A stretch of DNA of 64,000 nucleotides from Octopus bimaculoides (GCF_001194135.2 NC_068989.1:4360319-4424318); one strand, 5' to 3'. Counted from the first letter of the stretch, positions 56,001-62,000 are shown. Notes: generated by a model not told the origin, from the sequence alone. Translations and numbers: made by a program.

Positions 56001-59000
56001 CAACGGTCTTCACCTGAAATGCAACAAAATAATATTCGTAAGGGAGGGATACAAATCAAAGTCAATTTATTTTATCCTGCCAACCCAACTGACGTCTGCT
56101 GACTCACAAGGGATAAAATTTTTAAGACATGCAGTATTTGATCTGATAATCCAAGAAAAAACGAGCTAAATATGAAATAGTGTATTACTAACGTTTTACT
56201 ATTTCTGTTAGTTAAGTTCTTATAACATATTATTGAGTCAACCCTATTGTAGAGCAAAATTGAAGAAAAAATAATGTTACCCAGTTTTAAATGATCGTTC
56301 ATGTGCGTGGTTTTATTCTAGTAGATAAGGTTTTCTAGTTACTTAAAAGATGTTTTCTGAGTGCTGGTATTTCCTCAGATTTAATCTTAAGTAGACGTAG
56401 ATAGATAGATAGATAGATAGATAGATAGATAGATAGATAGATAGATAGATAGATAGATAGATAGATAGATGGATAGATAGATAGATAGGCATGAATATAT
56501 GTATACATATTCATATATATATATATATATATATATATATATATATATATATATATATATATATATATGTATATGTGTGTATGTATGTATATATTCTAAT
56601 TTGAATGAGAAGTACTGACAAAGCACATACCTTGTATGTGTGTTCGATATTGTTTATATAAATACATATACACATACAACGCGAAAGACTGAGAAAGTGA
56701 CAGACACACAGTCAAGCAGGCAGGAAGGCAGGAAGGCAGGCAAGCAGGGAAACAGTAGGTAGACAAACCAAGGGACTGAGAAATTGTTTTAGCCCTTTCC
56801 TTTTACCTGTGTCCTTCACATAAACTGCAAAAGGGGTTTTAGTTGGTTTGGTGTATTCGGTGAGAACCTGTTGAAGGGCTGTTGTTCTGTAGAGGCTGAA
56901 ACAGCCGGGACAACACATCACCGAACCAATCACATTCTGAGCAGTCTTAATCATCCAGAAATCTGTAATGACAAAATTTAATAATCATTTACCTAATTCA
57001 TCCAGTTGCCAATAACAATCCTTATTTAGGTTAACATAGCTAATGCAGTGATCCAAAAAACATATTTAGTCGATTACAATTTCAGCCCTCATAAAAAAAA
57101 AACGTTAACGCAAATGATTGTTGTTGGAGAATTAGGGTAATAATCCCGAAATATAAATGGATTTAAAATCTGTCTCAAACTGTATACCTTTACAAAATTT
57201 ATTTCGATTTTAATCTATTTAGATTAAGGAATTGCCTCCCTTGCCATTCTCGGCAAGTCTGCACACGTTATAACACGCTTGATTCAATATATATACAAAT
57301 ATATAACCTGTGAGCATGAATGAATAAAAACACGACCATAAATCTACGCCTACGTTGTCCGACTGATCATGTGCACATCCGTATATATTTACACAAAATG
57401 CATTTGCTTCTGCAGTCAAACTCTACAGTCAAAAATACATGGATTCGCACATACAACACGCACAAAAATGCACATAGACATACGTACGAATAAATGCAAT
57501 ACTCAGGTGACTGTGTATTAAGAAGCTTGCTTCCCAACCACATGGTTCTAGGTTCAGTCCCACTGCGTAGAACTTTGGGTAAGTATCTTTGGCTATAGCC
57601 TCTGGATGACAAAAGCCTTGTGAGTGGATCCGGTTGACGGAAACTGAAAGAAGACCGTTGTGTGTGTGTGTGTGTGACTTTGTGTTTGTGTTTTACCCCC
57701 ACCACTGCTTGACAACCGGTATTAGTGTGCTTACATCCCCATAACTTATCGGCTCGGCAAAAAATTCGACAGAATATACCCCAGGCTTAAAGATATAAAG
57801 GAAAGTGCTGGGGTCGAATCATTTCACTAAAAATTCATTCACAAGGAGCAATAGTCAAAGACACTTGTCCATGAAGTTGTGCACTGGGGTTGGACTCGAA
57901 ATCTCATGGATTGCAAAGCAAGCTTCTCATTCATACACCCATGCTTGCGCCTAAAACCAATTCTAATAACCTTTTGCATATTCAAATATTTGATGCCACA
58001 CCACCGGGCCAGTCCTCTTCCCTTGAGGATGTGTTCTGCCGCAGGCAGCTCCTATACGTTTGTCGTTATTGCACATCTGAAGTAATTCCAAAACGGCAGT
58101 GTCCTTAAACTCCATATCAGCATCAGTGGCCAGAATATAGACTTGACTCTCATCCACAACTTCATCTGTTGTTGCCGTCCATCTGTTCCAGAAAAACAAC
58201 CGAAAAAGGAAATAGTGTAAGTTTTTCTGTTTGTTTGATTTTGTTTTTTTTTTTTTAATTTTTGGCAGGTTCGGCGCGTTCAGATCATCGACTTCACAAA
58301 CAATTCATAGCATTAGATATATATACACACTCGTATAAGTATGACTCTCTCTATATATATATGCGTATATTTGTATATACATGTGTGTATATATATATAT
58401 GTGTATGCGTGTGTATGTGTATGTATGTATATNNNNNNNNNNNNNNNNNNNNNNNNNNNNNNNNNNNNNNNNNNNNNNNNNNNNNNNNNNNNNNNNNNNN
58501 NNNNNNNNNNNNNNNNNNNNNNNNNNNNNNNNNNNNNNNNNNNNNNNNNNNNNNNNNNNNNNNNNNNNNNNNNNNNNNNNNNNNNNNNNNNNNNNNNNNN
58601 NNNNNNNNNNNNNNNNNNNNNNNNNNNNNNNNNNNNNNNNNNNNNNNNNNNNNNNNNNNNNNNNNNNNNNNNNNNNNNNNNNNNNNNNNNNNNNNNNNNN
58701 NNNNNNNNNNNNNNNNNNNNNNNNNNNNNNNNNNNNNNNNNNNNNNNNNNNNNNNNNNNNNNNNNNNNNNNNNNNTGTGTGTGTGTGTGTGTGTGTGTGT
58801 GTGTGTGTGTGTGTGTGTGTGTGTGTGTGTGTGTGTGTGTGTGTGTGTTTGTGTGTGTATGTATATATTTCTGCTCATGTATTTTCTATACTTCATATGC
58901 TCGTGTTAAATGAATAAGTAGCAGAAATCGGCTAATTAAACAACTTCCTCAATTTACTCAACGTTAAAAGCTAAACGTTCTTGAATTTCTAGAATGTAAT

Positions 59001-62000
59001 TCGATATTTATATAAACATTTACACACTTGTTTATTTAATGATAGGCACAAGAGATCAAACACGTCAGTTGTTTCCAATATAGCAAGAAGGTGTCAGTGT
59101 TGAAGGAAAAGACTTGTTCAAATAGTTATGTCATAACGAAAAGACCAAAGAAATTCTAGGAGGTATATTTACATATGCCAATTAAAAATATATGTTTATG
59201 TTTGTGTGTATATATGTATAGCGATAGCTAGATAGATAGATAGATAGATAGATAGATAGATAGATAGATAGATAGATAGATAGATAGATAGATAGATAGA
59301 CAAGTTGGCAGGTAGATAGACAGGTACATACATACATACATACATACATACATACATACATACATACATACATACATACATACATATATATCCAATCCAT
59401 GACTGGAACTGTAAAAATCTGTAAAACTTTCCTGAAGTTTATCATTTAGATATATATGAGCATGTCTAGATATGTAACTATATGCATGAGAATACATATA
59501 TGAAAAATACACGTACATACATCCATCCATCCATCCATCCATACATACATACATACATACATACATACATACATACATAAAAACAAAAATACCCTTTTGT
59601 TGATGTTGAAATTCCAATGAAGGAACCTTAGATCTCGGTTCGCAAGAAATCTTGAAATAAACTGAATAATGACATACATGCATACATACATACATACATA
59701 CATACATACATACATGCATATTCAGCAAGAGATACAGAGATATGGAGCCATCCAACTCTTTGTAACTCAATGTAACTAAATGTAAACTGGAAAACAACAA
59801 TTTGTAAACATTTTGTTGCAGTATCCAGTAGGGTTAATGTGTAAATTACGGGTATTTGTTGGCTTGCTGTGCTAAACTAAACTCTTCTCATATATCTAAA
59901 AATTTAAATAAGCTTCCGTAAGAGAAATAATCTGTTCTATTACTCAAGAGGATTAGTCTTTCAAATATTTAACGTTTTGAAACATAAACACTGCATTTAT
60001 TTCTACCAATTGCAGACGACAATACTAAATTTATTTGAAAAATCTGCCAATGTTTTTCATCTCATCTTTATTTTTATGCTTATCTTTTTAGTTAACTTGA
60101 TACTAACACAATACACGCTTCATATTTACCTTGCATTTGGTGTGTTTTCTTGATGCGGTTCTCCACGTGTTTTCTCTGGATATGATGCTGTATCTGTTCT
60201 GTCCTTGAAAGTATCGTCAGAACATCTGGGACGTTGAGTAGAAACCTTAGTAATCTCTGCATATGGGACTTCATCAAAGCTCATCCGACTTACCTTAGCT
60301 TTTGGAAGTGACGTTACAATACTCTCCAAGAGGGGCAGTGGAGAAGGGCTCCACTTTTTCGTGGTCTTTGTTGTGAGAGACATTTTGGTTTTTACATCGG
60401 TTCCTAGTATTGATGAATTGTTTATGTTTCCAAGTGACGAAATAGAAGAGATATCAGAAAACGAGTCGGAATCAGAAGAATGTTTGTCTGATATACTTGG
60501 TTTTGTTCGGTGCATTATATTTGACATAATTGCTTGCTTTTTATTCGTTTTCTCGAACACTGCATCTTTTGCAGCTGCTTCGTCGGTGGAGTCTGTGGTT
60601 TGGAATGCAAGATTTATATACCCCCTTGAATGTTGTTGTGGAATGCTCGGTACATTCAGTTCCGCCATATTATCTATTTGGTCATCACTAACAAACGAAG
60701 ATGCTGTTGATGATGTCTTTAATTCAGACACCTCAGCTTCTATCCGATGTCCAGTTAGTCCAGTTTTACTGGGGAGAACATTTGCAGATGAAATTTCAAC
60801 AGAACTCTGATTTGTGAAAAGTGTCGGATATCCAACTTTCTCGATATTGTGACCGAATATACTCGACCTTCGTACATTCGAATGAGTGTTGTCTTTCTTC
60901 ACATGATTCTTGGAATGTCCAGCAGTATTGCTGTCCACGCAGCTCTTGGACTGATTCAAAGGTTCGTTTCCTACAAGAGAAGTGAGTTTTTGCACAAGGT
61001 CACTATTTTGCTTCTCTGTTGTCTTTTCTGTCTTATGTTCAATGATGGAATAAAATGTCCCCGTTTTCATTTCACATCTATTTACACCGGATGTCAACCG
61101 AAACTGCAATATGTACTGGAAATACATGGCTTGGCTCCATCGCTTTTTTGGTTTAATTTTTAACGGATCTTTGAAATGGATGAAAAATGGCATACCACCA
61201 GGAAGCTTCCAAGCGATCTGAATGCCATAAGGAGTCTCTACACAGATTCCATCAGAAATACTTAGGCTCAGTTTCTCTTGTGAAAGTTCTACGAGCTGCT
61301 GAGCGAATTCCTTAAGTGATGCCGACGTACAACCGTTGTCCATGAATATGTGTGCTTCCAGTATGACATCATTTAATTTTGAAGAAGTTGAAAGACCGCG
61401 GAGGCTCATTAGGAAACGTCCCATTTCATAGTCAGCTTCTCTGTACATTGTTGTGCAAATAAATATCCGACTTAATTTAGATTTACCTATCTCCGAGATT
61501 TTCTTTTCGGCTTCATTCTCGTACATCTTCAAATCTTTAATGCCAAGAATGAGATACTGATCGAAGAATATATTGTCCCATCCGTAAGAATGGAAAACTC
61601 CTTCGAATGGCATAAACAGGAATGGTGGTTTCGGGACCAGATCAGAGGTTTTTATCAAATAAGGATAACACCAGATTATGAATGCTACCACTGTAGCAAA
61701 AGCGATTGGGAGAAACGTCCTAAAATCTGCTTCTTCCTGAATGGCGAAGATTCGGGGCCCGAGAAGAGTGTGAGACAAAGCAACAGTTGCAGCGGTAGAG
61801 GCCACGGAAGGAATAACCAGCCCAAATGTAGTAACCGATAAGGCTAACGCCAAGCATGCCAATGCGTGGGAGAAGAGAGCTGAAGTAAAATTCAAAATTA
61901 ATGGGAGTCCTGTCATCCATTTTAGTAATTGGTCAGTTCCTCGAATTAATTCAGGCAATATTTGACTGGAATCCACTGACTCTTTGGCGGTTATATGAAA

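Follow-up and report, generated by a model that had tools for sequence, protein, structure and literature searches.

We analyzed a stretch of 64,000 nucleotides from Octopus bimaculoides (GCF_001194135.2 NC_068989.1:4360319-4424318; the whole stretch is called the window below, and positions are counted from its first letter) that carries two chitin synthase genes, CHS-A and CHS-B. The catalytic domain of CHS-B contains an insert of 335 residues, and we found that a long insert at this site is normal for the clade to which the enzyme belongs, which includes molluscs, annelids, and brachiopods; the insert of CHS-B is not unusual. A sequence-only reading of the window had singled it out as the most unusual protein feature present, a ranking that did not survive a survey of homologues, in which inserts of 300-440 aa are common. 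What had been flagged is the normal state of the clade, and it is already contained in public gene models of two other Octopus species. The insert is protein-coding sequence under purifying selection, in which in-frame changes of length are tolerated. Taken as a whole, our best explanation, which we consider likely, is that it represents a lineage-typical intradomain insert of lophotrochozoan chitin synthases, with a role as a regulatory or trafficking loop being favored. The descriptive part of this explanation is highly probable.

Coding status and predicted structure of the insert

CHS-B lies on the minus strand at the right-hand end of the window. Its large exon, open from 62150 to 60130, codes for transmembrane helices as well as for half of the GT2 catalytic domain, the first (ICTTMYREA, IFMDNG, and a further stretch of 18 residues, in that order), and the insert continues in the same frame as this upstream catalytic part. 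The insert occupies minus-strand positions 61094-60130 (965 nt, or 321 codons and 2 nt) and 58182-58143 (40 nt), giving 1005 nt and 335 codons with no stop, bounded by YILQFRL and VYILATDAD. The large exon ends at a donor reading TGCAAG/GTAAAT (60130/60129), and the acceptor consists of a pyrimidine tract followed by AACAG, with its last base at 58183 and the next exon beginning at 58182. The junction is in phase 2 and in frame, with 19 residues across it leading directly into VYILATDAD. The next exon reads (R) and 13 residues, which complete the insert with an acidic end that aligns with the family pattern ..DD[QH]T before the strand, and then continues with 12 further residues. These positions and splice sites confirm the run of 335 stop-free residues reported from the sequence alone. 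On its N-terminal side, the insert is anchored by a conserved helix of 18 residues (61095-61148, minus strand) in which RWSQ is invariant in the alignment, and on its C-terminal side by VYILATDAD, the beta-strand bearing the DxD motif (58116-58142, minus strand), where the I-L-A-T-D-x-D columns are nearly invariant.

The intron that separates the two parts of the insert (58183-60129, minus strand) contains an assembly gap, a run of N at 58433-58775 that contacts no coding base. Since this run is intronic, the reading frame of CHS-B is fixed by the splice sites and is independent of the gap length. When the orthologue from O. sinensis (P0083, 1411 aa) was mapped with tblastn, its residues 141-1411 fell on eight exons that follow one another in order along the minus strand, between 63135 and 49647. 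Residues 205-866 map to 62129-60129 and residues 866-938 to 58184-57966; residue 866 is common to both exons beside the gap intron, no residue is lost across that intron, and no coding exon is absent relative to P0083. The first ~140 residues of CHS-B fall beyond the window end (64000). The gap is bordered by (CA)n on one side and by a TA/CA-rich microsatellite tract on the other, and these flanks probably explain the failed assembly. Microsatellites of this intron, including (TATG)n, (GGAT)n, (TCTA)n, and (CA)n, lie at 59230-59720 and 58380-58860.

Within the insert DNA, the other two frames hold 18 and 22 stops, and the chance of 335 open codons at this base composition is about 3e-10. The closest database match (P0001) was built from four ~2.7-kb Logan contigs of a related octopod. 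Contig L001 from this octopod aligns unbroken from 62242 to 59699, short of the assembly gap, and enters the intron; it is thus genomic DNA and not cDNA, and it says nothing on splicing. For the same reason, P0001, whose contig continues into the intron, was ruled out as cDNA evidence. Nucleotide identity to L001 falls from 91.8% over the conserved part of the exon to 86.7% within the insert and to 80.6% for the intron beyond the donor, whose GT is kept. Indels are absent from the conserved part of the exon; the insert has two, both of 3 nt, and those of the intron measure 11, 1, 6, and 4 nt.

Against the related octopod, the Nei-Gojobori ratio of nonsynonymous to synonymous substitution (dN/dS, or omega) comes to 0.167 for the flank and 0.279 for the insert; the bootstrap 95% confidence interval of the insert value is 0.19-0.42, and no replicate reaches 1. 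This ratio, together with the purely 3-nt indels of the insert as compared to the non-triplet indels of the intron, upholds the earlier proposal of an expansion-tolerant loop under purifying selection. Constraint is patchy when measured by 50-codon block, with omega at 0.10 at 60944-60795, at 0.13-0.17 at 60494-60195, and at 0.39-0.54 in the remaining three blocks of the insert. The last 100 codons, with their omega of 0.13-0.17, include an octopod-specific constrained block of 53 residues (60234-60392, minus strand) that corresponds to gaps in gastropod orthologues. In O. sinensis (LOC118765089, P0083) and in O. vulgaris (P0084, a prediction), the gene models represent the same gene and hold the whole insert along with the same exon junction. 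Each matches the query at 90% identity; for the O. sinensis insert taken by itself, identity to that of the window is 87%, with 5 gap positions.

By composition, the insert comprises 15.2% Ser, 10.1% Thr, 8.4% Lys, 6.9% Asn, 6.0% Asp, and 6.0% Glu, as computed on a translation joined one base off, which garbles the last 13 residues only. Its description as rich in Ser, Thr, Asp, and Lys thus holds for Ser, Thr, and Lys, with Asn also raised, but not for Asp, which is only mildly raised. Similarly, the label of low complexity applies mainly to residues 204-228 and 235-247 but not to most of the insert, with only 5.6% of the 12-residue windows lying under the SEG trigger (2.2 bits). The only clearly low-complexity tract is the 25-residue run at 204-228 (60411-60485, minus strand), where 12-residue entropy goes down to 1.55 bits; residues 235-247 form a Thr/Lys tract. 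The insert is better described as compositionally biased and probably disordered than as low-complexity.

A Pfam search found no domain inside the insert. In a structure predicted by AlphaFold2 with a 69-sequence alignment, the predicted local distance difference test (pLDDT) score of the GT-A core is ~93-97 up to and including the RWSQ helix, and it is ~93 again from the VYILATD strand (modeled as E681-687). Between them, the insert (model residues 350-666) scores ~30 and forms only two short, low-confidence helices. With a core pLDDT above 90 on both sides, the catalytic GT-A fold is predicted to close around the loop, in agreement with what had been expected of it. The insert is probably a cytosolic, mostly disordered loop that exits the GT-A fold after the KKRWSQ helix and re-enters at the DxD beta-strand. 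The best Foldseek matches in the PDB are Candida Chs2, yeast Chs1, and Phytophthora Chs1 (E 1e-9 to 1e-7, probability 1.00), with hyaluronan and cellulose synthases ranking after the chitin synthases (E 4e-3 to 7e-3 for the cellulose synthase CesA), and a PDB sequence search returns the same families.

Family membership and conserved motifs

CHS-B belongs, as an ordinary member, to the expansion of chitin synthases that Zakrzewski et al. 2014 (PMC3942024) described in lophotrochozoans, and the long-insert enzymes are probably the "type II" of that study. The whole protein matches the Pfam family Chitin_synth_2 (PF03142) at 84.2 bits against a cut-off of 27 (E 1.1e-23). The exon translations carry the catalytic motifs in order, with TDADM (DxD), TGEDRW (G-E-D), and KQRRRW (Q-R-R-R-W) followed by a switch loop of 11 residues (CCPGC). 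The full-length O. sinensis orthologue has GT2 and chitin-synthase Pfam domains only, along with hydrophobic segments at its start, and no N-terminal myosin motor. CHS-B differs in this from the Ar-CS1 type of bivalves, which bears such a motor. CHS-B is 41-48% identical to the gastropod members of its orthogroup, as compared to 27-37% for other non-octopod homologues.

For all homologues that possess both anchors, we measured the spacing between RWSQ and the DxD strand. Among cephalopods, the spacing is 348 aa in CHS-B of the window, 343 and 344 aa in its O. sinensis and O. vulgaris orthologues, 197 aa in both CHS-A of the window and its O. vulgaris orthologue, and 361 and 208 aa in Argonauta. 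The chiton Liolophura has 266 aa (RefSeq XP_064614096.1, which carries all three of the motifs described below). Gastropod values range widely, with 342 aa in Plakobranchus, 163-250 aa in Haliotis, 250 aa in Gigantopelta, 239 aa in Aplysia, 227-231 aa in Littorina, Batillaria, and Nucella, 177-209 aa in Patella, and 179 aa in Lymnaea. Outside these groups, we found 117-126 aa in the bivalve Mytilus, 352 aa in the annelid Owenia, 325 aa in the brachiopod Lingula, and up to 439 aa among the other contigs. Short linkers are seen in SAM-domain bivalve enzymes (22-23 aa), Branchiostoma (amphioxus; 29 aa), and Exaiptasia (a cnidarian; 40 aa); insect enzymes probably have ~40 residues there as well.

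Overall, the long-insert clade spans 117-439 aa and the short-linker enzymes 22-40 aa. In a neighbor-joining tree of the flanks, every long-insert enzyme falls in one clade, CHS-B included, and every short-linker enzyme falls outside it. CHS-B is a myosin-less orthogroup within this clade, all members of which carry a long insert. The SAM-domain hits, which are of the type I metazoan kind, lie outside the clade, and CHS-B is not of this type. The Mytilus chitin synthases, possibly of the myosin-bearing (Ar-CS1) type, belong to the same long-insert clade as CHS-B. At a spacing of 343-348 aa, the octopod insert is ~80-170 aa longer than those of the chiton and gastropod orthologues (133-266 aa, with the 342 aa of Plakobranchus excepted), and the extra length lies mainly after the third motif. 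A separate group of cephalopod proteins (P0034, P0038, P0064, and P0023, from Argonauta hians, O. vulgaris, and others) has inserts of 361-439 aa with none of the three motifs and forms a clade of its own. For Owenia, Zakrzewski et al. 2014 (PMC3942024) state that their data are an RNA-seq assembly. Judging from its UniProt accession, the Owenia protein (P0076) appears to come from that study; if it does, the long insert is present in the mature mRNA of at least that member.

A profile hidden Markov model built from a MAFFT alignment of all inserts scored CHS-B at -6.4 bits, with 28 of 500 shuffles as good, and CHS-A at -0.1 bits, with 216 of 500. As the inserts are too divergent for global alignment, we switched to ungapped motif matrices, which were trained on other species only and scored against 1000 shuffles. 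Motif M1, a block of 13 residues with the core G-Y-P-T-L (VGYPTL; 60810-60848, minus strand), scores 12.7 bits, reached by one shuffle in 1000, and sits in the most constrained 50-codon block (omega 0.10). It aligns with the chiton, Aplysia, Lymnaea, Candidula, and others. Motif M3, a block of 12 residues reading G-x-x-N-x-[AG]-[FY] followed by acidic residues (60588-60623, minus strand), scores 13.8 bits, reached by none of the shuffles, and is aligned across the orthogroup. Between the two lies an acidic, Ser-rich block of 15 residues (60657-60701, minus strand) that is a weak match to the family motif M2, SSDQGI.x.D[DE]. The CHS-B version reads SDDQ-ID with the Gly missing, and MAFFT places it in the DDQG columns with a one-residue gap. 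Scored as a collinear M1-M2-M3 series, CHS-B reaches 26.7, compared to -13.3 +/- 5.8 in shuffles (0/1000).

The orthogroup alignment comprises the octopods, two other likely cephalopods, the chiton, Aplysia, Candidula, Lymnaea, Biomphalaria, Batillaria, Haliotis, and Patella. Its blocks follow a constant order, R-I-x-N-[IV]-G-Y-P-T-[LM]-x-[DE]-F, D-S-D-D-Q-G-F-x-S-V-D-E-S-S-P-P, and G-x-x-N-x-G-[FY]-x-x-D, with a last block, D-D-[DQ]-[HQ]-T, directly before YILATDAD. The chiton and gastropod orthologues carry M1, M2, and M3 in this order, which CHS-B shares for M1 and M3 and, less certainly, for M2. GYPTL is kept from chiton to octopus and lies in a part of the GT domain where pLDDT is below 50; the topology of the family makes this domain cytosolic. 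Among 48 non-redundant long inserts, 25 contain [SD]DQG (0.5 expected), 12 contain NPx[YF] (1.9 expected; in the forms NPAY, NPAF, and NPGF), and 42 contain N-x-x-[YF] (23.9 expected), and 300 shuffles never gave counts this high. Inserts with [SD]DQG include those of Owenia, Lingula, and P0012, a protein whose place in the tree is next to the CHS-A group. None of the three motifs occurs in the Mytilus inserts.

A description of the insert or its motifs was not found in the chitin synthase literature that we searched, in which conserved short motifs within a fast-evolving, disordered intradomain loop seem undiscussed. A 2026 preprint on ArCS1 mentions low-confidence disordered regions in general terms only. 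Alignments, phylogenies, and structure predictions of animal chitin synthases should anticipate the insert region and mask it.

Origin and possible role of the insert

M1 and M3 are common to the chiton, gastropod, and cephalopod orthologues, and the insert therefore dates at least to the mollusc ancestor. The motif patterns and the single clade of long-insert enzymes in the rough tree suggest, as the simplest reading, one ancestral insertion followed by divergence. This event may even predate the split between molluscs, annelids, and brachiopods, as the [SD]DQG motif and the rough tree would indicate. Again on the simplest reading, CHS-B would have retained the motifs, with M2 degraded to SDDQ-ID, and CHS-A would have lost every recognizable one. 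The sequence-only reading had proposed that the inserts were elaborated independently in each paralogue, which is not supported in view of the motifs collinear with those of chiton and gastropod proteins, the [SD]DQG of 25 of 48 inserts, and the single clade in the rough tree. The fuller form of that idea, in which each paralogue gained its own insert at a permissive site and then elaborated it, would account for the lack of detectable similarity between the CHS-A and CHS-B inserts and for the reversed intron positions around them. It leaves unexplained why long-insert enzymes cluster with the short-linker ones outside, why [SD]DQG occurs in at least four sub-clades (including the annelid, the brachiopod, and the sister of the CHS-A group), and why the motifs of CHS-B are collinear with those of orthologues from other mollusc classes, and we regard it as improbable.

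The insert might also have no function of its own, being a length-tolerant surface loop, a neutral spacer kept only since stops and frameshifts kill the downstream catalytic domain. Its range of 117-439 aa between paralogues and species, its pLDDT of ~30, the failure of the CHS-A and CHS-B inserts to align, and the lack of motifs in several clades, such as Mytilus and the P0038/Argonauta group, are all consistent with such a spacer. However, selection against stops alone would give an omega near 1, and we observed 0.28 overall and 0.10-0.17 in three blocks. The conservation of motifs across chitons, gastropods, and cephalopods, with [SD]DQG at 25/48 against 0.5 expected, likewise makes a purely neutral loop unlikely. 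Proteolysis offers another possible role, as fungal and insect chitin synthases are known to be activated by trypsin in vitro. In a zymogen-type arrangement, protease cleavage of the disordered insert would switch the synthase on, and the loop is exposed in the model and contains basic pairs (VRRSS, NKKQ, and TKKW). Yet the conserved blocks are GYPTL, SDDQ, and N-x-[AG]-[FY], with no conserved cleavage motif among them, and cleavage would split the GT-A domain into two chains, which is possible; we consider this arrangement very improbable. Least probable of all is an annotation artefact, with an unrecognized intron or exitron being removed from the mature mRNA. The window does contain a consensus donor-like AAG/GTAAGT at 60293 (GTAAGT at 60288-60293, minus strand), and the octopus gene models are predicted. 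In the related octopod, however, this site reads GGCAAGT, with GC in place of the GT, its phase 0 is at odds with the acceptor, and the codons that follow are among the most constrained (omega 0.135) in a run of 335 without a stop. The long insert is also present in Owenia, where the source study, if correctly linked to P0076, was RNA-seq-based. Together with the collinear mapping of the O. sinensis protein, the absence of the GT from the related octopod led us to reject the cryptic intron that had been raised as an alternative, and GTAAGT is not a splice site here.

Tyrosine sorting signals of the form G-Y-x-x-hydrophobic are recognized by the mu subunits of clathrin adaptors, and ALIX binds the form Y-P-x-L. 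Adaptors with PTB and EH domains recognize NPxY and NPF, and acidic Ser clusters typically serve in sorting or docking under the control of kinases. Regulated trafficking is established for both fungal chitin synthases and plant cellulose synthases. If the insert is a regulatory or trafficking loop, as we favor, its conserved motifs would act as docking sites, with G-Y-P-T-[LM] fitting both GYxx-hydrophobic and YPxL, and the N-x-[AG]-[FY]/NPxY block fitting the NPxY class. The acidic, Ser-rich blocks would be likely phosphorylation sites, the variable linkers between motifs could evolve freely through in-frame indels, and the loop would control the delivery, endocytosis, or turnover of the synthase.

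Several observations weigh against this explanation. The M2 match in CHS-B is weak, with its ungapped score being reached by 100 of 1000 shuffles (p ~0.1). Matches of the YxxPhi type are common by chance (41/48 inserts compared to 34 expected), and because short consensus matches are so frequent by chance, only conservation lends them weight. GYPTL fits LAMP1-type GYxxPhi and ALIX-type YPxL by consensus only, and its conserved context is longer than a plain sorting signal. The second motif of CHS-B is N-L-A-F, only a partial match to NPxY and a departure from the LDL-receptor type. CK2-type [ST]xx[DE] sites in the insert are not above composition (12 compared to 10.8 expected), a generic acidic-Ser pattern shows no family-wide enrichment (26/48 compared to 22), and the AlphaFold model has no confident contact with the core for any motif. 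With regard to the wider picture, the tree was built by neighbor-joining on 176 flank columns without support values, and the octopus gene models that carry the insert are computational predictions. Because of the NLAF form, the long GYPTL context, the lack of CK2 enrichment, and the lack of confident docking, the trafficking or regulatory mechanism, which draws on knowledge of short linear motifs, is one that we hold tentatively and at less than an even chance.

More doubtful is a broader proposal, in which the insert would be an ancient module that recruits clathrin-adaptor, PTB/EH, or ESCRT-type partners and sets the apical-membrane delivery or removal of each paralogue. If this were true, divergence of the loop would have given the mollusc CHS paralogues tissue- or structure-specific behavior, as in the shell, radula, beak, or stylet. 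The Tyr of GYPTL and the N-x-A-F block may provide mutable handles on the regulation and targeting of CHS paralogues in shell, radula, and beak formation.

Plant cellulose synthases offer the nearest functional parallel. The P-CR and the class-specific region (CSR) of CesA are lineage-specific insertions in a processive GT2 polymerase embedded in the membrane, where they lie within the cytosolic GT-A domain. The P-CR, which is folded, lies before the KAG-type motif and the CSR after the DxD. The CSR, mostly disordered and phosphorylated, is hypervariable from class to class, and endocytosis of CesA involves the AP2 mu subunit. Unlike either of these regions, the CHS-B insert lies between the KAG-type motif and the DxD, and it has no sequence similarity to them; the likeness is one of analogy only. 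In the chitin synthase ChsB of Aspergillus nidulans, a disordered N-terminal region is described as regulating transport to the secretion site (PMC10163080). The ChsB region is N-terminal, outside the catalytic domain, unrelated in sequence, and from another kingdom, and it differs in these respects from the insert of CHS-B.

The CHS-A paralogue and the surrounding locus

The insert of CHS-A, 184 aa at the homologous site (35660-36211, plus strand), was confirmed in both its length and its lack of alignment with that of CHS-B, with BLASTP returning nothing between the two (best E 1.8). The O. vulgaris orthologue of CHS-A (P0013) has the same spacing of 197 aa. Scored with the motif matrices, the CHS-A insert has no motif that does better than shuffles. 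Matches that had been picked by eye (KIPTIRCDY, YWSDDSE, and VNSAYVYGLDD) were dropped for this reason.

Introns are placed differently in the two genes. In CHS-A, an intron (33640-35627, plus strand) directly follows KKRWSQV and none is found at the end of the insert, and CHS-B has no intron at RWSQ and one 13 codons ahead of the DxD strand (60129-58183, minus strand). Two other likely cephalopod orthologues of CHS-B (P0020 and P0033) also have open reading frames that end in ...FQR, suggesting conservation of the position of this intron.

CHS-A (30880-44258, plus strand) and CHS-B (49647-63135, minus strand) are convergent, lying tail to tail with their ends ~5 kb apart. The terminus of CHS-B is at 49647 (...WVNQKE), and the plus strand has its last CHS-A-like open frame at 43722-44258. 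A mariner-type transposase fragment lies between the two genes (45774-46046, plus strand; Pfam Transposase_1, E 4e-13). An intron of CHS-B includes a long, stop-free, highly repetitive stretch of low complexity at 52426-53057, open on both strands, with runs of I, V, T, P, G, and D depending on the frame and a GC skew of -0.27. The window as a whole contains 14 gaps of N. At its far left, an open frame at 2-361 (minus strand) has a weak match to a GIY-YIG nuclease at 22.2 bits, just below the cut-off of 22.6, and may be the remnant of a Penelope-like retroelement.

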